A model generated the notes under the pieces. That model did no database searches. It was given only the letters and a program-made list of their open reading frames with translations, and was not told where the DNA came from. 64,000 nt of DNA from NCBI GenBank assembly GCA_002104905.1, contig MCFE01000448.1:9428-73427 (forward strand), given 5' to 3'. This document shows, piece after piece, positions 8,065 to 63,022 of the stretch (within the stretch, counting starts at the first letter, position 1; every line of letters begins with the position of its first letter). This DNA comes from Basidiobolus meristosporus CBS 931.73. Taxonomy: Eukaryota > Fungi > Basidiobolomycota. The translations under genes and the position numbers were made by a program.

Positions 8065-8122
8065 GACTTGTTCACACTGCGCCATTCCCACCTGAGCCGT
8101 TGAACTCTACTCTTTTAGAACT

Positions 8123-11775: not shown

Positions 11776-11779
11776 AGGA

Positions 11780-25041: not shown

Positions 25042-25200
25042 GTATCAATTGATAAACATGAAAAGTAAGAGAAATGGCTTAGTCAGGAATTAAGGAGTGT
25101 GAAAGCCAATTCATACACACAAATGTACGAGGTGATAGAGCTTCTGGGACTAGAAAGTGAGAAAATTGGCAGAGAACCAATCACAAGCCACTTATATATT

Positions 25201-25862: not shown

Positions 25863-25999
25863 ATTGTTGTAATGATTAATTTGTGAAATCTGGGGTGCAA
25901 CTATTTTTTGACGGTTTTTGCACATTGTCCTGATGGGATCAATACCTCTTAGTCACAGGAATTTAAGCTTGTGATAGCCTTTTGACTGGATCATAGCAA

Positions 26000-27386: not shown

Positions 27387-27742
27387 TGATACAAGTCTAG
27401 GTATAAGAGTGGTAGAGGAATAAGGAGTTTAGCTAGTATTGTATTTGCTAAAACTTAAGCTGATTTATGGAGGTTCCAGCAGCTCCTTATAGACATTTTT
27501 GCTGGATTAATTGCTGACTATTGGTATATCCTAATGTAGGTTGTGGCTGATGACTCATTTGATTGTATCATCATCACCCAAGAAGATCCTACTTAATATA
27601 CCTATTCCTGTCTGGTAAGGATCTGCTGACTAATGCTACTGATTTGATAGATAACACTGATATACTGATAGGCTAAACATATAACTAATAAATTAGACTA
27701 AAAACGGATCTAACTTAAACATTCAAGCTGTAGATCATAGCA
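27387..27742 (-). mobile_element. Solo LTR of gypsy family A, 4-bp TSD CAAA
   Basis: TGATACAAG...GATCATAGCA with caaa on both flanks. Homologous to the LTRs at 50020-50383 and 52668-53031. Confidence 0.85.
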
Positions 27743-28384: not shown

Positions 28385-29085
28385 AGACTCATTCCTTGTA
28401 ATTTTGCCTCATTGCATTACAATGCCATATAGTGCCATAGTTTGCCATTAAGCTCAAGTAAATGAGTATTTGGCCACCAACTGTGAAGCGTAGCTCCTCA
28501 TCCTCATGCAAAGCAGCCCCTGTGTGTCACCCATTGAGCTCAAAAAATCCATTTTTTGACCTTTTTTTGGGGATTAATGTTGTGCATGCAGTGTAGGTGC
28601 ACAGAGAGACTGAAGACATGCACTTGATACTCAATATGCATGAAACTTGGCATCTAGCTCCAGAAGTTTGTAACATGCCACAAAAATTCATGGCACTATC
28701 TTGGTCCACTGTTACTATCTGGCACTAAAGGTGCACTTTATAGGTTTTACTATTAAGCTAATATCTAAATATAGTGCCAGATAGTACAAGCAGACCAAGA
28801 TAGTGCCATGCATTCTTGTGATATATTACAAACCTTTGGAGCTAGATTCCAAGTGTCATGGGCATTAAGTATCAAGTGCGTGTCTTTTACTCTTGTGTGC
28901 TCTTACACATCATATGCAACGTTTATCCTAGACAAAGGGTCCAAAAATGGATTTGCCATCACAGTGGATGAGACACAGTAACTATTTTGCATGGGAATGT
29001 GTAATTAAACTTTACATTGGATGGACAAGTATAGGTCTGCTATGCTGCTCTGGCACATTACAGCACCACTGGTGCAAAGGTCTCA
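28385..29085. mobile_element. Third, older foldback element copy, in opposite orientation
   Basis: The left end reads aat|AGACTC. The arms are recognisable and the spacer is the reverse complement of the 21475 spacer. The right terminus is decayed, so the end coordinate is approximate. Confidence 0.75.
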
Positions 29086-32140: not shown

Positions 32141-32572
32141 TCAACTTGTGGCTTTCTCAGGACCATAACCAGCAGGGCTGAAAGCTCAAAACTGTTGTAA
32201 AAATTCATATTTCCACCTAATTATTCACCTAACTTAGTCACTTAGATCATTACCTTCAAATCCTAGAAAATACTGACCAAATTCCTTGTTGGGATTTACT
32301 TAGAATATTTTCACCAAAATACCAGGTACCCAGAACATGAAAATTCTCAAAGTTGTCCAAACAGCCCCAAACTTTGCACACATGTTCTTGGGACCTTCCT
32401 TAACCTATTCTATGTGCTTGCTATGCAAAGACCAGGTAAAAGTATAAATACCACTTTTACAATCAATAAATCATTAAGTGAAAACCACATAATCTACTTG
32501 TTCTCCAAATCACTTCCAATATCTCCAAGACTCTTACAACAGGTTATCAGCCCCAAGCTGTCACTCTCTGCA

Positions 32573-33214
32573 ATGTCTACTACTGCTATTACTGGAATTT
32601 TTCCCTCTGCTGAAAAGTTGGATGGCTCTAACTACCAAGTGTGGAAGGTGAAGATGAAGATGCTGCTAGAAGAAAGAGGCCTTTGGGATATTGTCATGGG
32701 AGAAGAATGCCCTCCTAAAGACGTGGGAGAGGAAGCCTTAAAGTACCAGAAGAAAGAACAAAGTGCCTTTAACTGCATTTGCCTTAATGTCAAGGACAAA
32801 TTGCTAATTCAATGCTCAAGAGAAAAAATGGCAAAGAATGCCTGGAAGGCATTAGAAGACACCTACCAGTCATGTTCAGCTGCCAAGAAAATGTATCTGA
32901 GAAGAAAATTCTTTACTACAAAGATGCTGCCAGGAGAAGAAATGAAAAATCTAATTAACAGAATCACCCTGCTGGTAGATGAGATGGAATCTGTGGGCGT
33001 ATCAACTACTGATGAGGATGTGATAGTTACCATCCTGAATAGCCTGACAGACAAGTTTCAGGGCCTTGTATCAGCCCTAGAGTCCAGAACTGAAGATTTG
33101 ACCTTAAATTATGTATATGGAAGGCTCCTGGATGAAGAATTAAGAAAATCAAGCGCCAATAAGAAGGAAGAAGAAAATGCTTTAATAAGCAATGATAACC
33201 AACAAAGGAGGTAA
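32573..33214 (+). pseudogene. gag: Copia-D gag (frameshifted before the zinc knuckle)
   Basis: KLDGSNYQVWKVKMKMLLEERGLWDIV...YLRRKF. The CNYC..KGH....C knuckle lies in another frame at ~33250. Confidence 0.85.
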
Positions 33215-33376
33215 CCAAGACCCTACAAAGGCAACAGCAACCTATTTTGCAACTACAGCAAAAGGAAAGGACACACATCAGACCGGTGTTTCAAAAAGTG
33301 AGATTATCAGCAAAAGAAGCCTGAATATGGAAATGCTGCAACAACTGAAGATAGACTATTCATATCTGCACTAAAT

Positions 33377-36331
33377 ATGACCACAAACAAGGATTCTCAG
33401 ACGTGGTATATTGACTCTGGAGCTTCTCAACACTTAGCACACCAAAAAGAACTTTTTACCCAATATCAAGAAATTCCAATTAAGAAGATTTTCATGGGTG
33501 ACAATAGAACACTTGATGCAGTGGGAGAAGGAACTATCCAAGTAAACCTAAGAAGCAGTGAAGGAAGCCATACACTGACCTTTAAAGAAGTACTCTATGT
33601 ACCAGAAATAGCCAAGAACCTACTCTCTGTAAGCAAGGCCACAGCAGAAGGACTCAGTTTCAGTTTTGACAATTCTGGATGCAGGATCACTGATCAAAAT
33701 GGTGCTCATATTGCCTTGGGCATCAGAGATCAGAATCTATACAAGTTGACTTATATTCCATCATATCTGGAAGCCAATATAAGTAACTTAAATGAAGAAA
33801 CACCAATGCTTTGGCACAGGAGATTTGGACACATCAATTTTGATTATTTGCGTAAAATGATCAAAGATCAGCTAATTTCTGGAGTGAAAATTGATCCCCC
33901 CGCTAATTTGGAGCACTGTGAAGCCTGCATATATGGGAAACAAGCCAGACAACCGTTCAAGAGCTCTGGGTTAATCAAAACTAAGAAAAAAATTAGATTA
34001 AGAAAATACGCTCTGACAATGGTGAAGAATATACCTCAAAACTCTTCATCCACTTCTACAAAATTCATGGGATAAAGCAAGAGACTACTGTACCATACTC
34101 CCCACAGCAAAATGGAGTAGCAGAACAAGCTAACAGATCAATAATTGATATGGCAAGATCTATGATCCATGATCAAAAATTATCCTATGATTTTTGGATG
34201 GAATCAGTTGCCACTGCTGTATATCTTAAAAATAGGAGTTATAACGGAATGCTTTGTGATTCTACTCCATTTGAAGCATGGTATGGATACAGACCAAGTG
34301 CAGAACATCTAAGAATATTTGGGTACAGCATATGCCAAAAAACTGGCCGGAAATCAGTCAAAATTTGCGCCAAAAAGTGTAAAATGCATATATTTGGGCT
34401 ACTGCAATGAGAGTAAGGCATACAGACTCCACAATACCAAAGCAAAGAAGCTTATCAAGTCCAGGGATGTGTTGTTTGATCAAAATTCAAAATTTTCACA
34501 AAAAATGACATCAGATGATGATGAAAATTTGATCTCAAGTCCACCAATTGTTAGGATTGAATCAGAGCAAAACAATGAAATTTTTTTCACTCCAGAGGAC
34601 TCTACAACCGTGGTTCAGCCAGAATCAGTGCCCAGGAATATCCCAGAAGTGATCATTCCAGTATCAAATGCCTGGAGATCAAATCAGACAAGAAATAGCC
34701 CAAATTACTATATCAATGAGGGTACAAACTTAGCCTATGCCTATTCAGTCCATGTTGATGAACCCCAGACTGTAAAAGAGGCCCTAAATAGCCCTCAGAC
34801 AAAGTTTTGGAGATCTTCAATGACTGAGGAGTATCAGGCACTGATGGAAAATCAAACTTGGGACTTAGTCAAATTACTAATCAACCAAAAATCAATTGGA
34901 TGCAGATGGGTCTTCAAGACAAAATACAAGGCTGATGGTACAATTGAAAGATACAAAGCAAGACTTGTAGCCAAAGGATACTCTCAAACAAAAGGACTTG
35001 ACTATACTGAGACCTTTGCACCGGTAGCCAAGTTTAATTCCATCAGATTAATTTTGGCTATTGCAGCAAAATATAAGTTTTTTATTCATCAAATGGATGT
35101 AAAAACTGCATTTTTGAATGGAGAACTTGATGAGGACGTGTATATGGACCAGCCTGATGGGTTTGTTGACCAAAATAACCCCCATTTGGTCTGCAAGCTT
35201 AAAAAGCCACTATATGGTCTCAAACAATCACCAAGAGCCTGGAATTGCGAGATAGATTCTTATTTGGAATCCTTGAGTTTCAAAAGAAGTAATGCTGACT
35301 ATAGTATATACTATAAGCCAGATAGAGCAAATCCAGCTCTATTAGCTCTATATGTGGATGATCTTATTATAGCCGCCAATATCCTAGAAACATTGGAAGA
35401 GACTAAATCCTGCCTATCTAAGGAGTTCAAGATGTCTGATTTAGGAGAACTTGGTTACTACCTAGGGATTAAGTTCTCCATAGACAGAAGTACCCAGACT
35501 ATTACCCTAAGCCAATCCAAGTATATTCAAGATATACTAAAGAAGTACAAAATGGAAGACTGTAAACCGGCAGCTACCCCAATGGAGACAAACCTTAACT
35601 TGGTCAAAACTCAACCAAATCAAGAGAGCTTGGTGCCATCTGAAAGCCCTGACTTTCCTTATCGATCTATAGTTGGCAGTCTGATGTATATCATGCTTGG
35701 AACACGTCCAGATATCTCATATTCAGTGGTAGTTGTCAGCCAACATAGTCAGAACTATGGATCTGATCATATTGCAGCAGTTAAGCGGATTTTTAGATAC
35801 CTAAAAGGAACTGCTGATATTTGCTTAAGATACACTTATAAGGACTCAGAAAAAGATCTTGTGGGATACTCTGATGCAGATTGGGGACAAAATTTGGAAG
35901 ACAGAAGATCCACCACAGGATACACCTTTCTTTACTGTAAAGGAGCAATTTCATGGAATTCAAGAAAGCAACCAACCATAGCACTTTCTACTACAGAGGC
36001 AGAGTATATGGCAGCCTGTGAAGCTACAAAAGAAGCAATGTGGTTAAGAAAGCTCTTTACAGATTTAGGCCTATGTCAAAAAACGCCTATTACTTTATTT
36101 CAAGACAATCTAGGATGTATACAATTAGGTAGAAATCCAACTTTTCATGCTAGAACCAAGCACATAGATATTAGACATCATTTCATATGTGAAGCTATAG
36201 AGAATAGCTTAGTTAGCTTAGTTTACTGTCCTACAGATGAAGTGATTGCAGACATATTTACCAAACCATTAGCTAGAGACAAGTTTGAATATCTTAGGTC
36301 AAAATTAGGACTAGTCAGTATGAACATTTAG
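33377..36331 (+). pseudogene. pol: Copia-D pol: protease, GAG-pre-integrase, partly deleted integrase, open RT-RNase H (34319-36331)
   Basis: WYIDSGAS, LWHRRFGH...CEAC, YKARLVAKGY, QMDVKTAFLNG, LYVDDL, GYSDADW, RTKHIDIRHH. Broken by a deletion and frameshifts between 33980 and 34320. Confidence 0.9.
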
Positions 36332-36691
36332 CTGAGTGGGAGTGTTGTAAAAATTTGTATTTCCACCTAAATACTCACCTAGCTTAGTCACTTAGATCAT
36401 TACCTTCAAATCCTAGAAAATACTGACCAAATTCCTTGTTGGGATTTACTTAGAATATTTTCACCAAAATACCAGGTACCCAGAACATGAAAATTCTCAA
36501 AGTTGTCCAAACAGCCCCACACTTTGCACACATGTTCTTGGGACCTTCCTTAACCTATTCTATGTGTTTGTTATGCCAAGACCAGGTAAAAGTATAAATA
36601 CTACTTTTACAATCAATAAATCATTAAGTGAAAACCACATAATCTACTTGTTCTCCAAATCACTTCCAATATCTCCAAGACTCTGACAACA

Positions 36692-41167: not shown

Positions 41168-41516
41168 TGTTATGATCTGCCGCTTGAATGTTTAAGTTAG
41201 ATCAGTCCTTAGTCAAATCAATTAGTATATGTTTAGGTTATCAGCATATCAGTAATATCTATCAAATCAGTAGCATTAGTCAGCAGATCCATATCAGACA
41301 GATATAGATATATCAAGTAGGATCTTATTGGGTGATGATGATGCAATCAAATGAGTCATTGGCCACAACCTACATTAGGAAATACAATTAGTCAGCAATT
41401 GATCTGGCAAAATGTATATAAGGAGCTACTGGAACCTCAATAAAAATCAGTTCAAGTTTTAGTGAATACATTACTAGCTAAACTCCTCTACAACTCCTAT
41501 ACCAAGACTTGTAACA
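41168..41516 (+). mobile_element. Solo LTR-A, TSD AGCT/AACT, inside copia-E RNase H
   Basis: TGTTATGATC...CTTGTAACA. The host frame rejoins across it. Confidence 0.85.
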
Positions 41517-42632: not shown

Positions 42633-43001
42633 TGTTACAAGTCTTGGTATAAGAGTTGTAGTGGAATAGGGAGTTTAGCTAGTATTGCACTCACTAAAAC
42701 TTGAACTGGTCTTTATTGAGGTTCCAGCATCTCCTTATATACATTTTGCAAGATCAACTGCTGACTAATTGTATTTTCTAATGTAGGCTGTAGGTGATGA
42801 CTTATTTGATTGCATCATTATCATGCAATAAGATCCTACTTGATATATCTATATCTGTCTGATAAGGATCTGCTGATTCATTGACTGACTAATGCTGCTG
42901 ATTTGATAGATAATACTGATATACTTATAAGCTAAACATATAACTAATTGATTTGACTAAAAACTGCTCTAACTTAAACATTCAAGCGGTAGATCTTAAC
43001 A
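42633..43001 (-). mobile_element. Solo LTR-A, perfect 4-bp TSD AGGC, inside copia-E RT
   Basis: TGTTACAAG...TCTTAACA. Removing it and one AGGC restores ...NIAFLNG. Confidence 0.9.
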
Positions 43002-44027
43002 AGGCTATATTATTGTCCATGTGGTGCCAATCTAGGTTATATACAGTGGCAAAGGCTAGAACACTCCTGATGGAGTTAGGTTTGGCTACCAGAGCAAATA
43101 CTTTGTTAATTACAAGTCCCTGGATCTGGAAAAAGCCACTAGTCATTAATCTAGCTTCATACTTATAAACAGTACTATTTGAGGCTATTTGCTCTTGAAG
43201 AGCTGTCTGCATCCTGCTGGCTTTCTTCCATTTGGTAAATCCATCTGTCCCAACATTTTTACATCAATCAGTGATTGGTACTCCTCCTGCATGGCTTGTT
43301 GCAGTATAATAGCATCAGTACCTTGCATTACCTGTTACAGATTCTGAGGTTTGGCACATAAGACAAGATAAGCTTCAGAATTATTGGATTTCTGCCACCA
43401 GGATCCAGGAGCCTTTCTTATTCTGGTAGATCTCCTAACTGGGAGAATATGCTCTGATCTGAAGCAGGTAGAAGTTTCCTCCATTTCTGCTGATTTAGCT
43501 ATTTTTTGTCTTCATTTCTATTGATTTCATCATCAAGCAGCTGACCAATGATCTTAAAGGCTTTCTGATCTGAAGTCTCCACATTTACAGAGTCCCTAGT
43601 GTTGATCAGCTTCTTTGTTTTGTCATTGTACACTTTATACCCTTCAGTAACTTCACAGCACCCAGAAAGATCTATTTTCTACTCTTTAGTACCAACCTTG
43701 AGTGTGCTTTGTCAGAGATGTGACAGAAAGCAACCTGCCAAAGATCCTCAGGTGCTTGAGGTCTGGTTATTGGCCTGTGTATGCTTCAAAGGGTGAAGAA
43801 TCATGTATTACTGCTGCTGGGCATCCATTCTTGACATATACTGTATTAGTCACAGATTCCGCCCAGAACTTGTAGTCCATTCCCTTATTGTATAATATAG
43901 ATCTTCCAATCTCTACTATTATTCCATTTGCACATTCTGATGCTCTATTTTGCTGAGGAGTGTATGGAACAGTACTTTGTTGAAGTAAACCAGTATTCAA
44001 GCAGTATTTTGCAAATTCCTAGGGCGG

Positions 44028-47000
44028 TGTGGTAGGGTAAACATACCTCCCACAGACAAGTTTATTCATATAGTCATTATGATATACTTATCCATATTTT
44101 ATCTTATCAGTATTATCCCATTCTTCTTTTGCCCATATTATCAGTATTATCCCCATATGATGTTTACCCTGATTAGTTATTAGCATTAGTTATCCCAGAT
44201 GTTATTTAGCTTTGTGATCAGTAGATGTATCTATATAAGGCAAGTACCCGCGTCAGTACCCGTGACACATGACCTAGGTCTGTGTTACCATCCCTACCAT
44301 TTCAATACCATATATGGTATTTCTATGTTGCACAGGTTTCAGACTACTGATTCCTGATTGGTTGAGAGTGCTGTGCCTTTTAGAACCTTCCAGGACATTC
44401 TTAGCATATTTTTAGCTCATAGTGATGTCATCAAGAATTCCACTGATACCTAGAATCTTCTAGAACCTTGTCATTAGTAATCACTTGGCAATCAGGAAAA
44501 GTATTTAAGGGAAAGCAATCCCTCATCAATAAATCATCCCTTCTATCAGTAACACTTCTACCTTATTGATTAGCAGTTGATCACTGCACCTGCCTTCAAC
44601 AGTACATCTCAGACCTGCCATCAAGGAGCTTTTCAGGGTAGTGCACAAGACACACAGAGGCCTTTGGAGACACTTGGAGCACCTAGGAAGCTAGAGAAGC
44701 AGGAGCTTTTACCATAGTGACATATTGACAAAGACACCAGCAGTTTAGACACAGAGGTTATTGCACCCATCAGACACCTCACACACCTTGAGTTGTGTAG
44801 CTTCTCCAAGGAGTACCTCTACACCACCACATATTTGGCACCCAACGTGGGGGGTTTGACTGAACTGCCCCTAGAAGACTTAAGAAAGAACAAATTATCA
44901 AGACCATGGATCTACCTTTACCAGGAATGCAAGGAACTCCTTTCTTTGATGGAACCAAAGTTAAAGCTTTCATCAAGAGGTGGGAGCTTTTCTGCAGAGC
45001 CCACAAAATACCTGAGGCCATTATGGCTGAAGAGATGCCCCCCTACAGCACTGATGAGATCATGCTCTCATTATATGAAAGAAATGATCTGCTGACAAAT
45101 TGGACCCTCTTGAAGAGCTACTTGATTGATGAATATGGAGAGAGACAAGTTGACTACACACTTCAAGACTTGGAGAACTTTGCTTATAGCAAGTTTAAGC
45201 AGCTACCATTGAAAGAATACTTGAGTGGCCTTGAGCAAATTGGAGAGTCACTGACAGCCCAAGGCATTATCACTGATCTGACTTTATCTGCCTATCTGCT
45301 CAGAGCACTACCAGAAGGCCTGGTGAGAAGGATTGAAAACAATCCTACTGTGAAAGCTATGAGTTCACTGCCTGCATTTCAGTTAGCTAAGCAGATTCTA
45401 CTTGCCCCTGAAGAAACCTCACCAATCAGAAAGCTTCTTTCAAGCCCAGAACAAAACCAAGATAGCCAAGACATACTTAATCCCAGCAATCAAAGCACTC
45501 AAATTCAGGAGCTGACACAGCAACTAGAGAAACTCTCTTTGCTACTTGCCAGCAAAGCATATGGTCAGAAGCCAGTAGAGAAAGAAGTCAAATATACATG
45601 CATGTGGTGTGACTCTGCCAACCATTCCAAGAGAAATTGCCAAGAGCTTCAGTCATTACTATCCACAGGTGATGTCCTATATAGTCCTCAGGGATACATA
45701 GTCAGTAAGCATGGTGACAAATTATCCACAGCATTTGGACAAGGAGGAATGAGAGTTCACTACAAGCAAGTCACCTCTCAAACAAGAAAGGTTCACCTCC
45801 ATGAAGAAGAAGATCCTGACTACTTTGATCCAGCTGAAGTTCTGAACTTTGACTATGAGGACCCCAGAGAGGCCCAAGATCATATAGCTTCAATTTATGC
45901 TTCAAAGAGACACCATCCTGAAAAAATGGCTAATCCAGGCCCAGCAACAAAAGTACCAAGATGTGAGCCAGAAGTTGTGATTGAGAAGAAAGCATCACCC
46001 CCATTAATTTTACAAGAGTCTGCCAAGGCCAACAACTACCACATGCAGCCTAGAGTCAAGCAAAAGGGTACCCCAGAGGCTCTGACAAGTCATATACTAG
46101 GAAGCAACATATCAATCAAGGTTGGAGAGCTACTCAGTGTATCACCATCTGTAAGAAAGACTCTGGATGAGCATATCAGAATAAGAAAGCATCCAATTGA
46201 AGCAACTCAAGGCAACCAGGTCAGGACAGTTCAAGGAAGCCAAGATATCAGTAAGCTGCATCAAAGCCAGAAACACTACTACTCAGTGGCAACTGCAACA
46301 ACTACAGGAACTGTGCATAATCAAGAAATCCTATGTCATATAGACAGTGGATCTGAGATATGTGTGATGCCTTTGGAGGCTTGGAAACAACTACCATGCA
46401 AAGACCTATTGCCCATAGACACCAATATCAATTGGAGCATGAAGGATGCCAACTCAGGGCAATCAAAGCTTTTAGGAATTATTCACAGCTTCCCTCTCAT
46501 CATTGAAGGAATACCCCATGAGATCCCAGTATTCATTTGTGCAAAGGCTAACTTTGAATTACTTCTTGGAAGACCATGGGAGGTAAAAGCAAGAGCAACT
46601 GCAGTGAACTACCCAGATGGCTCAGCATGGTATACTATATACTCAGAGAGCCCAGGACTAACAGCAACCTTCTGTGGTGTGGACTCAAACAATATCCGAT
46701 CAATGACATCATGTAGATTTCTATCTCAAGAAAGGACAGGTGGCTTCATTGAGGAAGACTGAGAGAGCACTTTGTTCTCCAAACTTACAGTGGTTAGCTA
46801 AAAAGTTCCCTGAAACTTTTTAGCTCAAGTGGGGGGTGGATGTGGTAGGGTAAACATACCTCCCACAGACAAGTTTATTCATATAGTCATTATGATATAC
46901 TTATCCATATTTTATCTTATCAGTATTATCCCATTCTTCTTTTGCCCATATTATCAGTATTATCCCCATATGATGTTTACCCTGATTAGTTATTAGCATT

Positions 47001-47644
47001 AGTTATCCCAGATGTTATTTAGCTTTGTGATCAGTAGATGTATCTATATAAGGCAAGTACCCGCGTCAGTACCCGTGACACATGACCTAGGTCTGTGTTA
47101 CCATCCCTACCATTTCAATACCATATATGGTATTTCTATGTTGCACAGGTTTCAGACTACTGATTCCTGATTGGTTGAGAGTGCTGTGCCTTTTAGAACC
47201 TTCCAGGACATTCTTAGCATATTTTTAGCTCATAGTGATGTCATCAAGAATTCCACTGATACCTAGAATCTTCTAGAACCTTGTCATTAGTAATCACTTG
47301 GCAATCAGGAAAAGTATTTAAGGGAAAGCAATCCCTCATCAATAAATCATCCCTTCTATCAGTAACACTTCTACCTTATTGATTAGCAGTTGATCACTGC
47401 ACCTGCCTTCAACAGTACATCTCAGACCTGCCATCAAGGAGCTTTTCAGGGTAGTGCACAAGACACACAGAGGCCTTTGGAGACACTTGGAGCACCTAGG
47501 AAGCTAGAGAAGCAGGAGCTTTTACCATAGTGACATATTGACAAAGACACCAGCAGTTTAGACACAGAGGTTATTGCACCCATCAGACACCTCACACACC
47601 TTGAGTTGTGTAGCTTCTCCAAGGAGTACCTCTACACCACCACA
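44028..47644 (+). mobile_element. Young non-autonomous LTR retroelement (family B), 3617 bp: 804-bp LTRs (44028-44831, 46841-47644), tRNA-Lys PBS, Gag-protease ORF only, PPT, TSD GCGG
   Basis: The LTRs are TGTGG..CCACA and I found no difference between them by eye. PBS TGGCACCCAACGTGGGG at 44836-44852, PPT AAGTGGGGGGTGGA at 46827-46840, gcgg on both flanks. Confidence 0.95.
44906..46762 (+). CDS. Intact 618-aa Gag + aspartic protease polyprotein (Ty3/gypsy-like; no RT, RNase H or integrase)
   Basis: Capsid-like start PFFDGTKVKAFIKRWE, CX2CX4HX4C knuckle CMWCDSANHSKRNC, protease ILCHIDSGSEICVM...FELLLGRPW. The stop lies 78 nt before the 3' LTR. Confidence 0.9.
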   Translation: MDLPLPGMQGTPFFDGTKVKAFIKRWELFCRAHKIPEAIMAEEMPPYSTDEIMLSLYERNDLLTNWTLLKSYLIDEYGERQVDYTLQDLENFAYSKFKQLPLKEYLSGLEQIGESLTAQGIITDLTLSAYLLRALPEGLVRRIENNPTVKAMSSLPAFQLAKQILLAPEETSPIRKLLSSPEQNQDSQDILNPSNQSTQIQELTQQLEKLSLLLASKAYGQKPVEKEVKYTCMWCDSANHSKRNCQELQSLLSTGDVLYSPQGYIVSKHGDKLSTAFGQGGMRVHYKQVTSQTRKVHLHEEEDPDYFDPAEVLNFDYEDPREAQDHIASIYASKRHHPEKMANPGPATKVPRCEPEVVIEKKASPPLILQESAKANNYHMQPRVKQKGTPEALTSHILGSNISIKVGELLSVSPSVRKTLDEHIRIRKHPIEATQGNQVRTVQGSQDISKLHQSQKHYYSVATATTTGTVHNQEILCHIDSGSEICVMPLEAWKQLPCKDLLPIDTNINWSMKDANSGQSKLLGIIHSFPLIIEGIPHEIPVFICAKANFELLLGRPWEVKARATAVNYPDGSAWYTIYSESPGLTATFCGVDSNNIRSMTSCRFLSQERTGGFIEED

Positions 47645-49040
47645 GCGGTATCCCTCTTCATTTTCACTTTGAAGTACCTTCAATTTACATACAGTTTGTG
47701 GTTCTGCTTTACTCTTGAAGTGCTTGTTCATCTCTACGGCCTCAACCTTTCTCTTGAGGAAGTACATCTAAGCAAATACTGTCTTCTCATCAATAAATGT
47801 TATAAAATATTTCTTGGCTGCAAAGCAGAGTGTTCTCATGGGCCCATATATATTGGAGTGCACAATATCCAGCATTCTGGTGATATTGATGCCTTCTGAG
47901 CTCCTGAAGTGTTGCTTAACTTGCTTGCCATATGAAAATCCCTTACTGACACTCAATTTAATTGTAATTCCACAGTTAGGGCACATTGAAACTGGTAGAT
48001 AATGTGATCTCTGATTCCCATAGCTAATTTTTGTCCATTTTAATGCAATGTTGAGTAGCTTAGCTTAGTCAAAATAAGCTTCAGTCCCTGAGTAGTTGCT
48101 TTATTGACTGAGAATAGTTTCTTAACTATTCTAAGAACATAGAGCATGTCAGTTGGTTTGCTGTTGTCACCCTTGAGATATCACACCTATTTGTGAGCCT
48201 TTCTGAGCTAAATTAAGCATTATCTTCAGTTTTCTCTGCTTGATTATTACATGTGAGTTTCTCATGAAGAAGTCTTCCTTGGATATAGTTCAGCATCAGT
48301 TTGTGTCCTCTACTTTCAAAAGAAAGTATTGGTGGCCCATACTTGCCTGGTAAGCTGCAAAGCAGACAAAGTGTCTCTTCTTTGTCATCTTCACCAGCAT
48401 TAATACTGTTTAATACTTCTGCAAGTGTCTCCATCCTGGTATTCAGTTGTAGCACTTCATCATCCAGCTTCTTCCTCATATTAAAGAGCTTTTGCCTTAA
48501 TTAAAGCTTCTTGACACTGACTCTGCTCTAAGAGTCTTCTCTAAGAACTCCCAAGTAGCTTTGGCAGTATTTGAAGCACAAATTTGTGCAATGACAGAAT
48601 CTTGCTCTGTGATACATATGGCATTAATGGCCTTTGTATTCTCCTCAGGAAACTACTCAATCTACTATGCTGCTTCATTGTGCTCAACTTCTCTTCCAGT
48701 TACCATATTCCATAACTATTTTTTGTCAAGGTGGGTCTGCATCTTGATTCTCCAAAGTCAGCAGTTCTTCCCATCAAACCTCTCCTTTACAGGGAAGATG
48801 TTTATGTTGTTCAAGATCATAGATCAGAAAGAATGTGGCAAAGTTAGAGCTGCAAATAAGTCCTACAGTGACTAAGATTAGTCTTTGTTGGTTAAGTGAG
48901 CTTTTAGCTGCTGGATGATGCCAAACAGTCTAATATCTTGACAGTTCACACTTTTAATTAGACCAAGTATACATCTATACTCATGGATATATTCTTGGAC
49001 CATTCCTTTCTGTCAAAGTGATGTCTGCTGGTGTGGACGC

Positions 49041-49844
49041 TGTGGTAGGGTAAACATACCTCCCACAGACAAGTTTATTCATATAGTCATTATGATATAC
49101 TTATCCATATTTTATCTTATCAGTATTATCCCATTCTTCTTTTGCCTATGTTATCAGTATTATCCCTATATGATGTTTACCCTAATTAGTTATTAGCATT
49201 AGTTATCCCAGATGTTATTCAGCTTTGTGATCAGTATATGTATCTACATAAGGCAAGTACCAGTGTCAGTACCCGTGACACATGACCTAGGTCTGTGTTA
49301 CCATCCCTACCATTTCAATACCATATATGGTATTTCTATGTTGCACAGGTTTCAGACTACTGATTCCTGATTGGTTGAATGTGCTGTGCCTTTTAGAACC
49401 TTCCAGGACATTCTTGGTATATTTTTAGCTCATAGTGATGTCATCAAGAATTCCACTGATACCTAGAATCTTCTAGAACCTTGTCATTAGTAATCAATTG
49501 GCAATCAGGAAAAGTATTCAAGGGAAAGCATTCCCTCATCAATAAATCATCCCTTCTATCAGTAACACTTCCACCTTATTGATTAGCAGTTGATCACTGC
49601 ACCTGCCTTCAACAGTACATCTCAGACCTGTCATCAAGGAGCTTTTTAAGGTAGCGCACAAGACACACAGAGGCCTTTGGAGACACTAGGAACACCTAAG
49701 AAGCTAGTGAAGCAGGAGCTTTTACCATAGTGGCATATTGACAAACACACCAGCAGTTTAGACACAGAGGGCATTGCACCCATCAGACACCTCACACACC
49801 TTGAGTTGTGTAGCTTCTCCCAGGAGTACCTCTACACCACCAAA
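49041..49844 (+). mobile_element. Solo LTR-B (804 bp), older, TSD ACGC/ATGC, inserted in a gypsy-A-like gag remnant
   Basis: Collinear with 44028-44831 with scattered substitutions. Flanks acgc (49037-49040) and atgc (49845-49848). Confidence 0.92.
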
Positions 49845-50019: not shown

Positions 50020-53000
50020 TGTTACAAGTCTTGGCATAAGAGTTGTAGTGGAATAGGGAGTTTAGTTAGTGTTATATTCACTAAAACTTAAATTGGTTTT
50101 TATTGAGGTTCCAGCAGTTCCTTATATACACTTTGCCAGATCAATTGCCGACTAATTGTAACTCCTAATGTAGGCTGTGGCCAATGACTCATCTGATTGC
50201 ATCATCATCACCCAACAAAATTCTATTTAATATATCTATTTCTGTCTGATAAGAATCTGCTGATTCATTTGCTGGCTAATGCTAGTGATTTGATAGATAA
50301 TACTGATATACTGATAAGATAAACATATAAACAAATGCTTTGACTAAGAACTAACATTAACATTCAAGCAGTAGATCATAACATACTCCCCTAACAATGT
50401 TGAGAGGGTCCTCCTGAATCTCTTTTCTTGTGATACCAATATCCTGATGGTTCAGTATTATCAGCAAGTCTTGCAAGCTTCAGTCTGTCCCTATGCACTA
50501 AGTCTTCCTGGATATTGCCTTGTTTGTCCACCAGCTGGTAAATTGCAAATGGACATTCTCTGATGATCTTGAATGGTCCTGTCCATTATGGCTTAAACTT
50601 CTTCCAAGTGTTGTTTCTCAGCAATACAAAGTTCCCAACTGTTAATGCCTCTGATGCCATAGTCTTTGCTTCATCTTTTCTGCATTTTGAGATACTTTGG
50701 TCTGTGCCTCTTGACATCTTTGTTACAGAAGCTGGTGTCTACTTGGCTCACTTAGTTCATCTTCTAAGGTGTCTGTAAGCTCTGGTTGTGTGAGATCTCC
50801 TGGAATCCTTGGTTCACATCCAAACACCAAGTAAGATGGCAATTGTTGGGTGGTGTTGTGTACTCTGACTCTGCATGCAAAGAGTGCTTGGTCTATATAC
50901 TCATCCCATCTACTGACAACTCCATTTGCATACTTGGTCAGCATTTTCCAAATAATTCATTTAACCACTCAGTAACTCCTTTAGTTCTGGGGTGATATGC
51001 CAAGGTTTTCAAGTGTTTGATCTGCTGCATTTCTATGTAAGCTTCCAATGTCTTTGCCATAAATTTGCACCACTATCAGGCAGAATCTCTACAGGGCATC
51101 CAAGCTTCATAGGGATCTCATGGTAGATGAAACTTGCAACTTCTTGCTCACTGGCTATAGGTGCAGCTTTAGCCACTGGCCTTTTGGTGGTATGGTCTAT
51201 TGCAACCAGGATTCAACAGGTGTATTTCCTGGTAGTTGGCAGTGTCCAATAAAGTCAATTACCCATCTCTCAAATGGTCTTATGGGCTCCAAGGGAAAGA
51301 GTTCAGCAATTCTCTAAGCAATTCACTCCATCTAGTCATTCTTCTAAAGAGTACCTTCTGAATAAATATACTTGAGGGAGGCATAATCAGTCTTGTCAGT
51401 GCATTTAACGTCTTCAATAAAGCATCTCCATGTCTTCAAGCAGTGTATTATAGCAAGCATCTCCTTCTCATGCACTGGATGGTTTTGTTCCGCTGAGTTC
51501 AGTTTCTTGGACTCAAAGGCAACTGGGTAGTCCTTTCCCTTGTTTTCTTGGCACAACACTTGACCAATTGCATAATCTGAAGCATCTGTGCACAAAATAA
51601 ACTCTTTTCTGAAGTCAGGTAATCTTAAGCTTAGCAGCTTAGCAAGTTCACTCTTGACCACCTGGAAGGTAGTCTCACCAGCTATGTCCCACTTGTAGGT
51701 ATTGTTCTTCTTGAGGATATCAGTTAAAGGGGCTGCAATACTTTCAAAGGACTTGACAAATCTCCAATAATAGGAAACCATTCCCAGCAATGATCTGGCT
51801 CTATTATGCTATAGGACTGCTTCAGAATCTTGATAAGCTCAACTTTCTTAGGGTCTAAAGTCACTCCTGTGCTTGTCTCTATGTGTCCCAGATATGCAAC
51901 ATGTTCCTTGAAGAACTTGTACTTGGCTAGCTTGCCATATAGCTTGTTCTCTCTTAGCTTCTTCAAGACCATTTCAATGTGCACCTTGTGATCCTTTTCT
52001 GTCTTGATGTATATCAATATGTCACCTGGGTAGATTATCACAAACTTGTCAAAGTTCTCCTGGAAGTCAGTCTGCATAAGAGCCATGAATGTTGCAGGGG
52101 CATTGGTAAGACCAAACTCATGACTAAGTACTTGTAATGTCATATCTAGACATACTCTTGAACTATCCCTTTCTGTTCAAGAGTCTTCAATATTCCTCTT
52201 AGAAGAGTCTGCTGCTGTGGGGTTCTAAAGCATCCGGAGCGTCCAACACAGACTCATCCCAGGTAGAGATTGTGAAGAATCCCATCATGTTGGCAAACAT
52301 GATCTTGTTGTGGTACCACAGTAAAGCTGCATCCACCTGGTAACAGACTTGACAATGTAACTTGCTTTCTGGAGCAATTCCCTTGACCTTGAAAGCTTCT
52401 TCAATCTGGAGGAACCAAGTTTTCAGGTTTTCATTGACTCTACCATGGTAGCAGTTGACCTTCACACTAAAGTTGATCTTGACAGGGTTTTGCTGGCTTT
52501 GGGCTACGGTAGTTGTTCCTTGTTGCTACTGACTAAGGATTTGGTGTAACAGTTGCTGCTGGGACAGGATTTGTTGCATGGCATTCTTCCATTCTTGGTT
52601 TCTGGCCATCTTGAGGGAGGCTTCTTCTTTCTTCAGGAGGGATGTTTCTGGTTATTGCTGCTACCAATGTTACAAGTGTTGGTATAAGAGTTGTAGAGGA
52701 ACAGGGAGTTTAGCTAGTATTGTACTTGCCAAACCTTGAACTGACTTTTATTGAGGTACCAGCATCTCCTTATATACATTTTACCAGATCCAATGCTTAC
52801 TAATTGTATTTCCTAATGTAGGCTGTGGATGGTGACTCATTTGATTGCATCATCATCACCCAATAAGATTCTATTTAACGTATCTATTTTTGTCTGATAA
52901 GGATTTGCTGATTCATTTACTGGCTAATGCTACTGATTTGACAGATAATACTGATATACTGATAAGCAAAACATATAACTAATTGATCTAACTAAGAACT

Positions 53001-53031
53001 AAATTAAACATTCCAGCAGTAGATCATAACA
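50020..53031 (-). mobile_element. Internally deleted Ty3/gypsy family A element with both LTRs (52668-53031, 50020-50383), TSD CATC/TATC
   Basis: Minus strand: PBS TGGTAGCAGC (tRNA-iMet type), gag VNCYHGRVNENLKTWF, RT FGLTNAPATF, RNase H LCTDASDYAIG..EKEMLAII, integrase WDEYIDQALFA, PPT AGGGGAGTA. Confidence 0.9.
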
Positions 53032-55959: not shown

Positions 55960-57820
55960 AATCAAACTGACATGCTGGGAGATCAAAAGACAAGTTGAGT
56001 GCCCTTGGAGCCTGTCAGACCATTTGAAAGATGGGAATTGATTTTATTGGAAGACTGCCAACCACCAGGTAATGCAACTGTTGGATCCTAGTAGCAATTT
56101 AACATGCCAACAAATGGCCAGTGGCTAAAGCAGGGCCTATAGCCAGTGAACAAGATGTTGCAAGCTTTATGTAACATGTTATCATTATGAAGTTTGGATG
56201 CCCTGCAGCAATCTTATCTGATGGAGGAGCAAGCTATATGGCCAAGACATTGGAAGCTTACCTAGAAAGCCAGAAGATCATGTTGCAATTTAAGAAGTGA
56301 TATGGATTTAAGGGACTTATCAAGATATAATGATAATAGTTGAACTGCTGTTTATTCATAAAGAGCATCAGTCTTTATACCTTTGTAGAAGTAATACAGT
56401 GGTAATACTAAGTAAGGAGGGTTTCTTAACATTCAGGTGAATTCTGTAATAGTTTTAAGGCTAGTACATAATGTTTGATAAAAAGTGTGATTTTGCTCTT
56501 GACTATAGGGGAATAATCATTGGATCATATATCTGAAGAAACTAGCAAAGTTGGGGCTGCAAGTTAGACCTATAGTGACCAAGACTAGTCTAGAATTGTT
56601 AAGTAAGTTCTCAGCTACTGGACAATACCAAATAGTCCAATATTTCCACAGATCATTCACTTGAAAACCTCAGCTTATCACCCTAGAACTAATGGTGTCA
56701 CTGAGCAGTTTAATGGATTATTTGGAAAATGCTGACCAAGTATTCAAATCAAGCTGTCAATAGATAGGATGAGTATATAGACCAAGCACTTTTTGCATGC
56801 AGAGTTAGAGTGCACAATACCACCCAACAATTGCTATTTTACCCAGTGTATGGATATGAACTAAGGATTCCAGGTAATCTCACACATCCAAAGCTTGCAG
56901 ATGCCCTGGAAGATGTGCTCAGTCAGCCAAGTAGACACCAGCAGATGAAGCAAAGATGTCAAGAGGCACAGGCCAGAGTATCTCAAAGTGCAGAAGAGAC
57001 AGAGATTTGATAGGACTATATAACCAAAAGCATTGACAGTTGAGAGCTTTGTATTGTTGAGAGACAAGACTTGGAAGAAGTGTGAGCTATAATGGACAGA
57101 GCCATTCAAGATCATCAGAGAAGGTCCATTTGCAACTTACAAACTAGTGCACAAACAAGGGAATATCCAGGAAGATCTAGTTCACAGAGACAGACTCAAG
57201 CCTGTAGGCTTGCCAACAACACTGAACCATCAAGATATTGGTATCACAAAGAAGGCAATTCTGGAGAACCATCTCATCATTAGTAGGGGAGAATGTTATT
57301 ATATCCCGCTTGAATGTTTAAGTTAGATTATATTTTGGTTAAATCAATTAGGCATATATTTAGCCTATCAGTTTATCAGTGTTATCTATGAAATTAATAG
57401 CATTAGTCAGCATATGAATCAGCAGATCCCTATCAGACAGAAATAGATATATTAAGTAGGATCTTAATGGGTGATGATGATGCAATCAAATGAGTCATCA
57501 GTGACAACCTACACTAGGAATTGCAATTAGTCAGCAGTTGATCTGGTAAAATGCATATAAGGAGCTGCTGGAACCTCAATAAATATCAGTCCAACTATTA
57601 GCAGACTGTAATGTATTTAAGGATATACAAACAGTGATTATGCAATCAATTGAGTCATTATTCACAATCTGCATTAGGAAATATGTTTACTCAGCACTTG
57701 TTCTTGATAATTGTATATAAGGGGCTACTGGAACCTTAAATGTAACTAGCTCAAGGTTCAGAGAATTCAGTACTGGTTAAACTCCCTATTCCCCTACATC
57801 ACTTAAGCCAAGACTTGTAA
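55960..57820 (+). mobile_element. Gypsy-A integrase remnant, PPT and composite LTR (57294-57820, 3' half duplicated)
   Basis: WDEYIDQALFACRVRVHNTT, a GPF motif, tagtaggggagaa then TGTTATT. The LTR ends CTTGTAACA and is followed by a further gag/integrase remnant (57830-58410). Confidence 0.75.
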
Positions 57821-58413: not shown

Positions 58414-61175
58414 TGTTATGATCAATCACTTTACTGTTTGATTCAGATCAGTTTTTAGTCAAATAAATTGGTATTAGGTTTAGCCTATCAGCATGTCAGT
58501 TTTATCTAGCAAATCTGTAGTATTTGCCAGCAGATGCATCAGCTGGTCCTGATCAAACAGAAATCAATATATCAAGTAAGATCTAATTGGATGATAATGA
58601 TGAAATTCAGTGATTTATCAGTCATAATCTACATTAGGAAATACAATCAGACAGAATTTGATCTGGCAAAATGTATATAAGGAGCTGCTGGAACCTCAAC
58701 AATAATCATTTCAAGTTTTAGTGAATACAATACTATCTAAACTCCTTTTTCCTCTACAACTCTGATATCAAATCTCATAAAAGTGGCAGCAGCAATAACC
58801 AGAAACTTCCTACTGAATAAAGAAGCAGCCATCCTCAAGATGTCAGAGAATCAAGAATGGAAGAATGCTATATAGCATATTCTGGCTTAACAGCAACAGT
58901 TACTTCAGATCCTTAGCCAGCTGCAACAAGGAATGACTACCATGACCCAGAGCCAGCAAAACCCTGTCAAGAGCAACTTTGGTGTGAAGATCAACTGGTG
59001 CCATGATAGGGTCAAAGAAAACCTGGGAGCTTGGCACTTGCAGAGTGAGAGAGCTTTTAAGAATAAGGGAATTGCTCCAGTAAGCAATTTGCAGTGTGCA
59101 GCCACTTACCTGGCAGATGCAGCTTTGCAGTGGTACCACAATAAGATCAGGTCAGCCACCATGATGGGTTGCTCTACAATCTCTACCTGGGATGAGTTTG
59201 TGTCTCAAACTCAGGATGCTTTGGAACCCCACAGCAGCAGACATTTCTTAGAGGAATATTGATAACTCTCAAACAGAAAGGAATGGTTCAAGAGTATGTC
59301 TATAAATATTTATGCCAACTTAGGCAAATTGAAAGAATGGACCCCCTGGATCAAGTTAAGTATTTTATTGATGAGCTGAAAGAAAGAACTTTCAAGAAAG
59401 TGTATTATTGAAGACCTTAAACTATTGATGAAGCCATCAAAATTGCCATTGGCTATGACTCAGCCATGTTTGGAGATGGGAAGCCCACAATGACTAATTG
59501 GAGAGGCTATAATCACTGAAAGAAGGGAGCCAGAAGCAGTGGTAATGGAAATAGATGCTATGCAGAAGAGTCCTGCCTCAGAAGAATGGAAGAAGAAAGG
59601 CTTTACTCTAATTGCCACTAGCAGAGATCTGCTCCAAAGTACTACCCTTGGAAAAGAAATGGGCACAAGTCAATAAGAGCCTTCAGCCATATTTAAATTG
59701 TTGAGCATAGTAATACAGAGGATGAACTTGAAGAAGATACAGAACTCCCCTTCCATATGTCAGAAGAATGCCTATCTCAAATGACTGCAAACTCAGAAAG
59801 GCTATTATTCTTGAGTGGAGTAATCAATGGAGTGCCTGCCAGGATTACAATTGGCTCAGGTGCATCACATGAGTATATGCCAGAGCAATTTACCTTGAAA
59901 GCTGGAATCCACTTGGAACTCACCAAATTAACTTCAGTTGCAATGATTAATGGGAACTCTCACATAATCAGCCATATTACTCTGCAAGTGATATGAAGAT
60001 AAATGACTATGAAGACCTTCAGGTTTATATATTTCAGAGCTGCAACCTTGACCTTATATATTGAAAAGCCTGGCTGCTGTTTTGTAATCCATTAATCAAC
60101 TGGAGAACCCATGCTACTCAAATCCTGAAGGATAACATGACCTATGAGCTGGATTTCTATTTGGTCATTATCAGTGTGTGTGAAACAGGTAAACTTGATA
60201 AGCACAGTTCTGTAGAGCACTCAGAAAAGGTACCCAGATGTTTCTCATGACAGTATTACAGGAGGATTCCTCTACTCCAGCACCTCAGAAGGTCCATACT
60301 CTATGGAAGGAGTATTCATATGTGTTTCCAGATGAACTTATAAGCCAAACTCAGGTCAGAGACATGGATCATGCCATTGAAACAGGAGATAGCCCTGCTG
60401 TGAGTAAGTCACCTGACAGAATGAGTCCATTGGAGTTGGAAGGTATGAAGAGACATATAGATCAGTTATTGGAGCAAGAATATATTACACCCAGCAAGTC
60501 ACCTTGGGGAGCACCAGTACTTTTTGTGAAGAAGAAGGATGGAACACTTGGGATGTGCATTGACTACAGAGCCTTCAACTCATTTACTGTGAAGAATAAA
60601 TATCCAATACCTTGAATTGATGAACTTTTGGACAAACTCAAGCAAGCCACTATATTCAGCAAGATTGACCTCATAGCACTCAGAAGAAGTTTGCGCCACA
60701 ACAGACAGGACTTTTTAAGATCATCAGAGAATGTCCATTTGCAACTTATCAACCAGTGGACAAACAAGATAAATTGTGCAAAGTTTTAGCTCATTGAGAC
60801 AGACTCTAGCTTGCAGGATTTGTTGCAAATACTAAGCCATCAAGATATTGGTGACACAAGAAAAGCATTTCAAGAAAACCTTCACAACTCTAGTAGGGAA
60901 AATGTTGTGATCTACCACTTAAATGTATAAGTTGGATCATATCATTAGTGTTAGGTTTAGCCCATCAGTATAGATATGAATGGGTGATGATGATGTAATC
61001 AAATGAGTAATCAGTCACAACCTACATCAGGAAACACAATTAGTCAGTAATTGATCTGGCAAAATGTAAATAAGGAGCTGCTGGAATCTCAATAAAAATT
61101 GATTCAAGTTTTAGTGAATGCAATACTAGCTAAACTCTCTACCCCACTACAACTCTTATATCAATAAGTGTAATA
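58414..61175 (+). mobile_element. Internally deleted gypsy-A element with two decayed LTRs (58414-58782, 60903-61175)
   Basis: Gag 58933-59262, protease ITIGSGAS, RT N-terminus [29 protein letters not shown], then a jump to the integrase C-terminus and PPT. No TSD recognisable. Confidence 0.8.
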
Positions 61176-61780
61176 TGGTATGGAACATATGATTACACTA
61201 AATGTCTTAATAAATTATTTGGAAAAGTGCTGGCCAAGTATGCAATTGGAGCTTGTAGTAGATGGAATGAGTATGTTGACCAACCAATGTTTACTGCGGA
61301 GATAGAATGTATAGCCCAACCCAACAAATACCATCTGCCTTGGTGTTTGGATGTGAATAATGAATTCCAGGAAATTGTTGAAATATTGGACTATTTGGTA
61401 TCATTCAGCAGCTAAAAATTTACTTAACAATTCTAGGCTAGTCTTAGTCACTGTAGAACTCATTTACTGCCTTAACTTTGCCACTTTCTCCAGATATTTG
61501 ATCTTATGATTATTCCCCTATAGTCAGGATCAAATTAGCACTATTACCAAACATTATGTACTAACCCTGAAACTGATACAGAATGCTCCTGAATATTGAG
61601 AAACCCTCCCTACTTAGTGTTGCAGCTGTATTACTTCTACAAAGGTATAAATACTGAGCTTCTTTATGAATAAACAACAGTTCAACTATTATCACTATTT
61701 CTTGATAAGTTCCTTATATTCAAATCACTTCTTAAATTGCAACAGGTTAAGAGCCCTGATTGCCTTAATCTATTCTAAAG

Positions 61781-63022
61781 ATGACTTCTACCAGCAAACA
61801 AAGCAATACCAACATCTTCCCTGTAAAGGAGAGGTTTGATGGGAAGAACTACAGACTTTGGAGAATCAAGATGCAGATCCACCTTGAGGAAAGAAAGCTT
61901 TGGAACATAGTAACAGGAAAGGAAGTTGAGCCCAAAGGAACAGCAGAAGATGTGGAGAAGTTTCAAGAGAAGGAGAGAAAGGCCTTCAATGCACTATGCA
62001 TCAATGTGCAAGACTCCTTCATTGGACAAATCCATGCCTCAAATACTGCCAAAGCAGCATGGAAATCCTTAGAGAAGATCTTTAGAGCAAAGTCAGTATC
62101 AAGCAAGCTTTATTTGAAACAAAAGTTCTTCAACATGAGAAAAAAGCCAGATGATGACATGCTACAACTCATTACCAGAATGGAGACACTTGCAGAAGAA
62201 CTTTACAGCATTAATGCTGGTGTAGATGATGAAGAAAAGATACTCTGTCTGCTTTGCAGCCTACCAGACGAGTATGAGCCACTCATACTTTCTTTTGAAA
62301 GCAGAGAAGACAACTTGACTTTAGACTATGTTAAAGGAAGACTTCTCCATGAAGAACTCAGACATAATGATCAAGCAGAGAAAATTGAAGATAATGCTTT
62401 ATTCAGTTCAGAAAGGCATACAGAAAAGAAGGGAAAGCAACAAAACCGAAGAAAACCTGGCTGCTGTAACTACTGTAGGAAGCCAGGACACTGGGCAAGA
62501 GAATGCAAGAAGAAACAAGCAGACAAAAAACAGAAACTAGAGCAGGCAAACCATATAACTACTGATGAACAGCTATTTGTCACTGTACAAGAGAGTGCAA
62601 GTAACCAAAGTAATGAATGGTATATTGACTCTGGAGCATCACAGCATATTTGTGGTATAAAGGATTGGTTCAGCAACTTAAAGACTATTCCCGTAAGAAA
62701 GGTTTATCTGGGAGATAACTCTGCATTGGAAGCTACCGCCAGTGGGTCTATACAACTAAATATGAGTGATAACTCAGGGGCAACAACAGCAAAACTGACT
62801 GACGTACTCTATGTACCTGGAATAGCTAAGAACCTGCTCTCAGTCAGTAAAGCAACTACTCAGGGACTGAAATTTGTTTTTACTAAGCTAAGCTGCTCAA
62901 TATTGAGTGAAAATGGACAAAAATTAGCTTTGGGAATCAGAGATCACAATATATACAAGTTACAATGCAAGATCATTTTACCTGAGTATGTCAACATTGC
63001 TGAAACTGATGAAACCAACTAG
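61781..63022 (+). CDS. gag: Copia-E Gag-protease ORF (413 aa), ending in a single in-frame TAG
   Basis: RFDGKNYRLWRIKM, CNYCRKPGHWARECK knuckle, WYIDSGASQH protease. Confidence 0.85.
   Translation: MTSTSKQSNTNIFPVKERFDGKNYRLWRIKMQIHLEERKLWNIVTGKEVEPKGTAEDVEKFQEKERKAFNALCINVQDSFIGQIHASNTAKAAWKSLEKIFRAKSVSSKLYLKQKFFNMRKKPDDDMLQLITRMETLAEELYSINAGVDDEEKILCLLCSLPDEYEPLILSFESREDNLTLDYVKGRLLHEELRHNDQAEKIEDNALFSSERHTEKKGKQQNRRKPGCCNYCRKPGHWARECKKKQADKKQKLEQANHITTDEQLFVTVQESASNQSNEWYIDSGASQHICGIKDWFSNLKTIPVRKVYLGDNSALEATASGSIQLNMSDNSGATTAKLTDVLYVPGIAKNLLSVSKATTQGLKFVFTKLSCSILSENGQKLALGIRDHNIYKLQCKIILPEYVNIAETDETN

Follow-up and report, generated by a model that had tools for sequence, protein, structure and literature searches.

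Non-autonomous long terminal repeat (LTR) retrotransposons that code only for Gag and a protease, the GAG/PROT-only families, are common in plants, and 28 of them have been described in sugar beet (PMC13570524). The plant hosts of these families and of the related TR-GAG elements are Coffea, Arabidopsis, the Triticeae and sugar beet (PMC13570524). BARE-2 of barley, as cited in PMC13570524 from 'Life without GAG', makes no Gag and uses that of BARE-1. Here we describe an LTR element of 3,617 bp from Basidiobolus meristosporus CBS 931.73. It occupies positions 44028-47644 of a stretch of 64,000 nt (contig MCFE01000448.1, positions 9428-73427), which reaches the contig end and is called the window below. 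Basidiobolus is an early-diverging fungus, a gut symbiont and occasional opportunist; the original prediction, made from the letters of the DNA alone, had rightly taken the host for a fungus. The element retains one intact open reading frame (ORF) for Gag and protease (PR), and lacks reverse transcriptase (RT), RNase H and integrase (IN). We estimate at about 85 per cent the probability that it is a pol-less, non-autonomous derivative of a Ty3/gypsy element, that its integration is genuine and very recent, and that the enzymes came from a full-length relative active at about the same time.

Structure, integration and age of the element

The element is made of two LTRs around an interior of 2,009 bp. 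Its parts and the corresponding empty site are listed below by window position.

44024-44027, plus strand: target-site duplication GCGG, 5' copy, matched by the empty-site paralogue
44028-44831, plus strand: 5' LTR, 804 bp, TG..CA
44836-44852, plus strand: primer-binding site (PBS) TGGCACCCAACGTGGGG, tRNA-Lys1,2 type, 4 nt past the 5' LTR
44906-46762, plus strand: single ORF for Gag-protease, 618 aa, the sole long ORF of the interior
46796-46825, plus strand: hairpin with a 12-bp stem and a 6-nt loop, just upstream of the polypurine tract (PPT)
46827-46840, plus strand: PPT AAGTGGGGGGTGGA, directly abutting the 3' LTR
46841-47644, plus strand: 3' LTR, 804 bp, same sequence as the 5' LTR
47645-47648, plus strand: target-site duplication GCGG, 3' copy, matched by the empty-site paralogue
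63437-63441, minus strand: empty-site equivalent in a paralogous Copia copy, found by alignment to the insertion flanks

Of the structural marks of an LTR retrotransposon, TG..CA repeats, a duplication of 4 bp (within the 4-6 bp of the definition) and a PPT are present, all three already pointed out in the original prediction. That prediction had also found no difference between the LTRs by eye. Exact alignment agrees, with 0 mismatches over 804 bp, and the identity breaks off exactly at both boundaries. The first and last 12 nt of the LTR form an imperfect terminal inverted repeat. Candidate promoter (TATATAA at 44232) and polyadenylation (AATAAA at 44528) signals, proposed by sequence only, each occur once in the LTR.

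The PBS is a TGG-initiated site of 17 nt, present only once in the window. It is identical to the published PBS of a coelacanth foamy-like element and differs by 1 nt from that of human foamy virus, which is the tRNA-Lys1,2 PBS. The predicted tRNA-Lys assignment is reasonable as far as the site itself goes, but the Basidiobolus tRNA was not seen: ARAGORN found no tRNA gene in the window or in four loci.

The folding energy of the hairpin upstream of the PPT lies within that of shuffled sequences (z = -1.4), and the hairpin was not retained as a functional element. A scan for bacterial promoters and terminators is inapplicable to a fungal LTR.

The insertion is flanked by two pieces (43267-44027 and 47645-48943) of a Copia copy on the minus strand, which is degraded and spans about 43267-48943 in the self-comparison of the window; the element is nested in its pol region. 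A paralogous Copia copy at 61383-64000 of the same window is about 79% identical to these flanks. Its segment 63395-63485 spans the insertion point gap-free only if GCGG is counted once, which bears out the predicted duplication on both sides. Because this paralogous empty site aligns without a gap, a real integration event is much the best reading.

The same observations bear on the quality of the assembly. The element sits in a 52-kb repeat-rich stretch that reaches the contig end, and polishing can homogenise repeats; a repeat collapse or a misjoin might therefore have produced the identical LTRs or removed pol. We regard such an artefact as very unlikely. The genome was obtained by PacBio sequencing (PMC7466969), so that single reads can span 3.6 kb; the boundaries are exact, the 4-bp duplication is matched by the empty-site paralogue, and the putative junction lies within one continuous ORF. 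A misjoin would also need sequence common to the end of the PR region and the region before the PPT, and none was seen.

The element is a very young insertion. With 0 differences in 804 bp, the divergence of the LTRs is at most about 0.4%, which would place the insertion at less than about 0.2-2 million years ago if one assumes generic substitution rates between 1e-9 and 1e-8 per site and year rather than values measured in B. meristosporus. This youth is relevant to the possibility that a full-length element was inserted here and lost pol later by in situ deletion (illegitimate recombination). Resident LTR elements commonly suffer internal deletions over time. Here the deletion would have to precede any substitution in 1,608 bp of LTR, and to spare the ORF, the PBS and the PPT exactly, and we consider this course of events quite unlikely.

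A second, older insertion of the same LTR family lies close by.

49041-49844, plus strand: solo LTR of this family, with 96.3% identity to the LTR of the element, ending in ..AA instead of ..CA, with flanks ACGC/ATGC

The solo LTR starts 1,397 bp beyond the end of the element and about 100 bp past the end of detectable Copia homology, so that there are two family insertions within 1.4 kb. It differs from the LTR of the element by 30 substitutions, 20 of them transitions, and its flanks match at three of four positions. As had been proposed, the family was inserted more than once: the solo LTR shows two insertions at different times, and its parent may have been either full-length or deleted. 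The 6 bases upstream of the two insertions are similar (GGGCGG at 44022-44027 for the element, GGACGC at 49035-49040 for the solo LTR); on these two sites only, they may reflect a target preference.

The Gag-protease reading frame and its relatives

The ORF is a Gag-protease of the Ty3/gypsy lineage, as indicated by motifs, distant homologues and predicted folds. As predicted, it is uninterrupted and fills nearly the whole interior (1,857 of 2,009 bases, or 92%). Its regions are the following.

44945-45415, plus strand: all-helical capsid-like region with two lobes, aa 14-170, from a model of high confidence
45599-45640, plus strand: CCHC zinc knuckle CX2CX4HX4C, aa 232-245, by motif
46016-46195, plus strand: DUF4100-like region, aa 371-428, C-terminal part of the Pfam profile, sub-threshold
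46283-46705, plus strand: retropepsin-type aspartic protease, aa 460-600, by motifs, homologues and model
46700-46759, plus strand: C-terminal tail, 20 aa past the last conserved motif, by alignment to relatives

The CCHC knuckle and the DSG protease of the original prediction are both found. The knuckle has the exact spacing, and a conserved small beta region follows it to about aa 292; each of its three Cys reaches at least 90% conservation among the relatives of alignment A3, and the majority consensus of both A2 and A3 reads C-x2-C-D-x3-H-x4-C. In the protease, DSG is at aa 480-482 (46343-46351) and LGRPW at aa 554-558, and the near-invariant family residues D480, G482, G524 and G555 are all kept. 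The AlphaFold model of the ORF, made with 60 relatives, has three confident blocks (aa 1-170, 230-290 and 460-600). The protease block matches the RVP domain of Ddi1 and the HIV protease with a Foldseek probability of 1.00 and TM-scores of 0.7-0.79, and the identity of the protease is firm. A separate model of aa 1-220 (pLDDT 86) has the capsids of dArc1, PNMA2, Copia and Ty3 as its best matches among solved structures, with TM-scores of 0.47-0.59 for PNMA2 and dArc1; the best match in a viral library is ORF1 of a Penicillium metavirus. The capsid identity of the N-terminus is probable. A search of PDB sequences with the ORF gave nothing meaningful. Judged from its sequence, the Gag-protease ORF is apparently functional.

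The match to DUF4100 (PF13352) covers only positions 170-227 of the 232 of the profile; the matches of the relatives P0005 and P0008 lie at this end too. A literature search on DUF4100 found no paper mentioning this domain.

Since the folds resemble the capsids of Arc and PNMA and the protease of Ddi1, one could think of a gag-protease gene domesticated by the host in the manner of these proteins. This is extremely improbable for an ORF enclosed by identical LTRs, PBS, PPT and target-site duplication and nested in a Copia copy. The G+C content at third codon positions is 39% in the ORF and 68% in a neighbouring host-gene exon, and the search of representative proteins gave no orthologue in any annotated proteome.

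A word-index protein search with the ORF, in the range of 340-1081 aa, gave no match. With phmmer, 684 matches were obtained among 1.84 billion sequences representing about 15 billion proteins; the best of them share about 27% identity with the ORF. The top relatives are from Smittium culicis, S. simulii and Furculomyces (Harpellales), together with Logan and metagenome proteins. The closest are OMJ18467.1 and OMJ17852.1 of Smittium culicis, PVU87237.1 of Furculomyces, and the Logan proteins P0012 and P0016 (E 1e-41 to 1e-24, about 24-29% identity). In the long relatives, RVT_1, then RT_RNaseH, then Integrase_H2C2 and rve follow downstream of the aligned Gag-PR; the Gag and PR of the element are thus homologous to those of elements of the order PR-RT-RH-IN, which defines Ty3/gypsy (Metaviridae). 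A MAFFT alignment shows that the relatives, including the Gag-Pol proteins of the Harpellales and P0012 and P0016, are collinear with the ORF through CCHC, DxGSE and LGRPW to a conserved FC.V...N.R motif at aa 589-598. Past this motif they continue into RT, RNase H and IN, whereas the ORF of the window has 20 more residues and then stops. These relatives are only distant, and none of them is therefore a candidate partner. The alignments A2 and A4 of the relatives are too divergent for deriving search patterns.

The predicted absence of RT, RNase H and IN from the interior is confirmed. When the relatives were compared with the window by tblastn, their matches within the element were confined to the ORF, from its first residues to about residue 599, and nine full-length Gag-Pol relatives matched Gag-PR only. 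The interior outside the ORF amounts to 152 nt (74 + 78 nt), and a search of all three frames in the 141 nt that follow the last conserved motif found no pol remnant.

The only other sequence of the family is in Basidiobolus ranarum, on a 2-kb contig (JASJQH010010687.1; L002:1461-2052). The N-terminus of its gag is 39% identical to the ORF over 178 aa, and it is preceded by the same PBS, with one transition, and a similar leader. Because the PBS and leader are kept while gag is only 39% identical, the family is old in the genus, occurring in two or more Basidiobolus species, and its PBS is under constraint. This gag is saturated for the ratio of non-synonymous to synonymous substitutions (dN/dS).

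A metagenome scan with the PBS pattern gave 20 loci, none of them related to the family. At one of these, on a soil-type metagenome contig (L008:138-745, minus strand), 25 of the 26 nt of the LTR end and PBS are present, followed by an unrelated gag-like ORF starting with P.FDG. This is another retroelement with the same tRNA primer.

Some more distant, metagenomic relatives have two ORFs (L003, L004, L026, L027 and one ENA contig), and in all five of them pol is read in the -1 frame with respect to gag-pro. Their first ORF, Gag-PR, stops 54-65 residues past the start of LGRPW; the ORF of the window stops at 65. Among the relatives examined at the DNA level, an in-phase heptamer U_UUA_AAA or U_UUA_AAC is found 6-12 nt before the gag-pro stop in three of four (L003:2964-2976, L004:5910-5922 and L027:3310-3319), and the -1 frame is open across the stop region in all four. 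These features are consistent with programmed -1 frameshifting. At its own end the ORF of the window shows neither such a heptamer nor an open -1 frame. What the element retains might be the whole of a native first ORF, pol having been removed cleanly, and its tail of 20 aa may be either the native end of this ORF or a read-through of the deletion junction. The position of the stop suits a native gag-pro end, and the lack of a slippery site and of an open -1 frame speaks against it.

Two of these relatives have a third long ORF after pol, of 927-956 aa (L026:8083-10950 and L027:7207-9987). L026 is an 11.1-kb element with 405-bp LTRs and L027 a 10.5-kb unit. The two third ORFs share 31% identity over about 890 aa (E 4e-143); FRHID and PHLPHGS lie in the conserved C-terminal half, and neither Pfam nor the PDB sequences gave a match.

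Origin of the pol-less copy

The element is non-autonomous, because its interior has no room left to encode RT, RNase H and IN. A normal target-site duplication without enzymes of its own means that RT and IN must have come from another element, and the identity of the LTRs implies that this partner was active recently. The recent activity of an RT- and IN-encoding relative in B. meristosporus matters for the stability of the genome. We infer that complementation took place in trans. RNA would be transcribed from the 5' LTR and packaged into particles of homologous Gag carrying the Gag-PR-Pol of the partner; cDNA synthesis would be primed by tRNA-Lys, and integration by the enzymes of the partner would leave the 4-bp duplication. 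The pol-less RNA could have come from a master copy that was already deleted, or the deletion could have arisen de novo in a single event, with roughly even odds.

Several results weigh against this account. No autonomous partner was found in the representative-protein, exact-match, metagenome and viral searches, and there is no second internal copy in the window. No protein more than 51% identical to the ORF exists among the 1.84 billion representatives. An exact-sequence look-up of the ORF returned no record, and the scans of metagenome proteins and viral contigs returned no relative. Since fungal gene calling is usually run on repeat-masked sequence and the searches covered no fungal genome, the empty protein, metagenome and viral searches are weak evidence. 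The Pfam comparison suggested by the original prediction gave both expected domains, but both below the curated cut-offs: DUF4100 with 23.4 bits (E 7e-5) for a gathering threshold of 27.9, and Asp_protease with E 0.016. The predicted capsid-like domain likewise has a helical two-lobed model and capsids as best matches, but the E-values are weak (0.03 for dArc1 and 0.007 for the Penicillium metavirus).

Given a recent integration with borrowed enzymes, there are two main ways in which the copy may have lost pol, and we find them about equally likely. As the original prediction proposed, it may belong to a propagating, 'semi-autonomous' lineage similar to TR-GAG, in which deleted masters are transcribed and their own Gag-PR assembles and matures the particles, with just RT and IN supplied by an autonomous partner. 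We hold this only tentatively, at somewhat less than an even chance. Alternatively, at odds close to these, the copy may have been dead on arrival: a template switch skipped pol during reverse transcription, and the shortened cDNA was integrated and gave no further copies.

The tidiness of the deletion speaks for a propagating lineage. The coding region of Gag-PR and all cis signals are kept, and there are 78 nt from the stop codon to the 3' LTR; the ORF ends 65 residues past the start of LGRPW, within the 54-65 of the native first ORF of the two-ORF relatives. For a one-off event, both breakpoints would have to fall by chance just outside Gag-PR and just upstream of the PPT. This neatness is, however, partly an effect of ascertainment, since neat elements get flagged. 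A tail of about 20 codons is about the chance length after a random junction, the relatives nearest by score have Gag-Pol in a single ORF, and the in-phase heptamer and open -1 frame of the two-ORF relatives are missing here. An intact ORF is expected from youth alone.

Large internal deletions during reverse transcription are common in retroelements, and a single such event accounts for the identical LTRs, the perfect duplication and the intact ORF without any extra assumption. No second copy with the junction between PR and PPT is known. For a propagating lineage, one internal copy means that there is no shared junction, dN/dS or partner to point to; for the de novo deletion, it means that the two are indistinguishable. 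Two further facts are in keeping with a lineage: the LTR family was inserted at least twice, at separate times, and GAG/PROT-only families are a recurrent outcome in plants.

We therefore put forward only as a tentative proposal, a little short of even, that Basidiobolus harbours an active Ty3/gypsy lineage coding for Gag and protease only, which makes and matures its own particles and borrows just RT and IN. If true, this would be the first capsid-level parasite of the TR-GAG type described in fungi, and in an early-diverging lineage. If further copies share the junction, Basidiobolus would offer a culturable fungal system for a question so far studied mainly in plants, namely in what way LTR elements that keep Gag but are not autonomous compete with their autonomous partners, or exploit them, when both share particles. 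A unique junction would make the element an ordinary defective copy.

Surroundings and comparison with known elements

The window is divided by a sharp break in composition. Positions 1-12000 contain host genes (51-58% G+C), and positions 12001-64000 form a repeat field of 52 kb (37-42% G+C), which extends to the contig end. The host genes code for an Mcp5-PH protein and an ankyrin-DIL protein in the window; just upstream of the window, the contig also encodes a kinase and an Arf-type GTPase. A long exon of the neighbouring host gene shares 100% identity with a protein of B. meristosporus CBS 931.73.

The repeat field contains another Copia-type element at 32193-36691, whose two 349-bp LTRs (32193-32541 and 36343-36691) share 96.8% identity. 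The coding part is broken into three ORFs: gag; beta-barrel and pre-integrase; SH3-like and RVT_2. A repeat of about 360 bp is present in at least eight copies of 75-86% identity (27387-27742, 41168-41516, 42633-43001, 50020-50383, 52668-53031, 57294-57601, 58414-58771 and 60981-61173). The copies at 50020 and 52668 form a direct pair; the 2.3 kb between them hold weak minus-strand remnants of Ty3/gypsy RT/RNase H (50801-51799), and the whole may be an old shortened LTR element of a different family. Three mutually related stretches of 565-742 bp (21471-22212, 25200-25863 and 28467-29031), each self-reverse-complementary at 72-94% identity, look like foldback or long inverted-repeat elements.

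Compared with described non-autonomous elements, the element shares LTRs, a PBS and a PPT with the LARD and TRIM groups. These have no coding capacity, whereas one intact ORF fills 92% of its interior, and it is neither a LARD nor a TRIM. It also resembles the defective proviruses and LTR elements that arise by deletion during reverse transcription, in that the LTRs are identical, the duplication is normal and internal genes are absent. Such copies are usually unique, with arbitrary breakpoints; the breakpoints here spare a complete gene and all the cis signals. The original prediction had cited BARE-2 as an analogue. Both are non-autonomous LTR elements relying on the proteins of a partner, but the deficiency is the opposite one: BARE-2, as cited in PMC13570524, is of the Gag-less type, while the present element keeps Gag and has no pol.

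The TR-GAG and GAG/PROT-only elements of plants, to which the original prediction had rightly referred, are the nearest in structure. Like the element described here, they have LTRs, a PBS, a PPT, a length below 4 kb, one Gag ORF (to which the families of sugar beet add a protease) and a presumed autonomous partner, and they lack RT, RNase H and IN. The plant cases are multi-copy families, whereas the fungal element is known from one internal copy. Classical TR-GAG elements code for Gag only. At 3,617 bp the element agrees with the strict definition of TR-GAG in its LTRs, PBS, PPT and length, and departs from it in keeping an enzymatic domain, a complete retropepsin. The original prediction had taken such a particle-level parasitism to be uncharacterised in this group of fungi, and we found no example of a Gag-retaining non-autonomous LTR element from any fungus in the open-access literature. 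The element fits the broader GAG/PROT-only class of PMC13570524. It is a Ty3/gypsy derivative without pol, a new member of a kind already known, but not yet described from this lineage.

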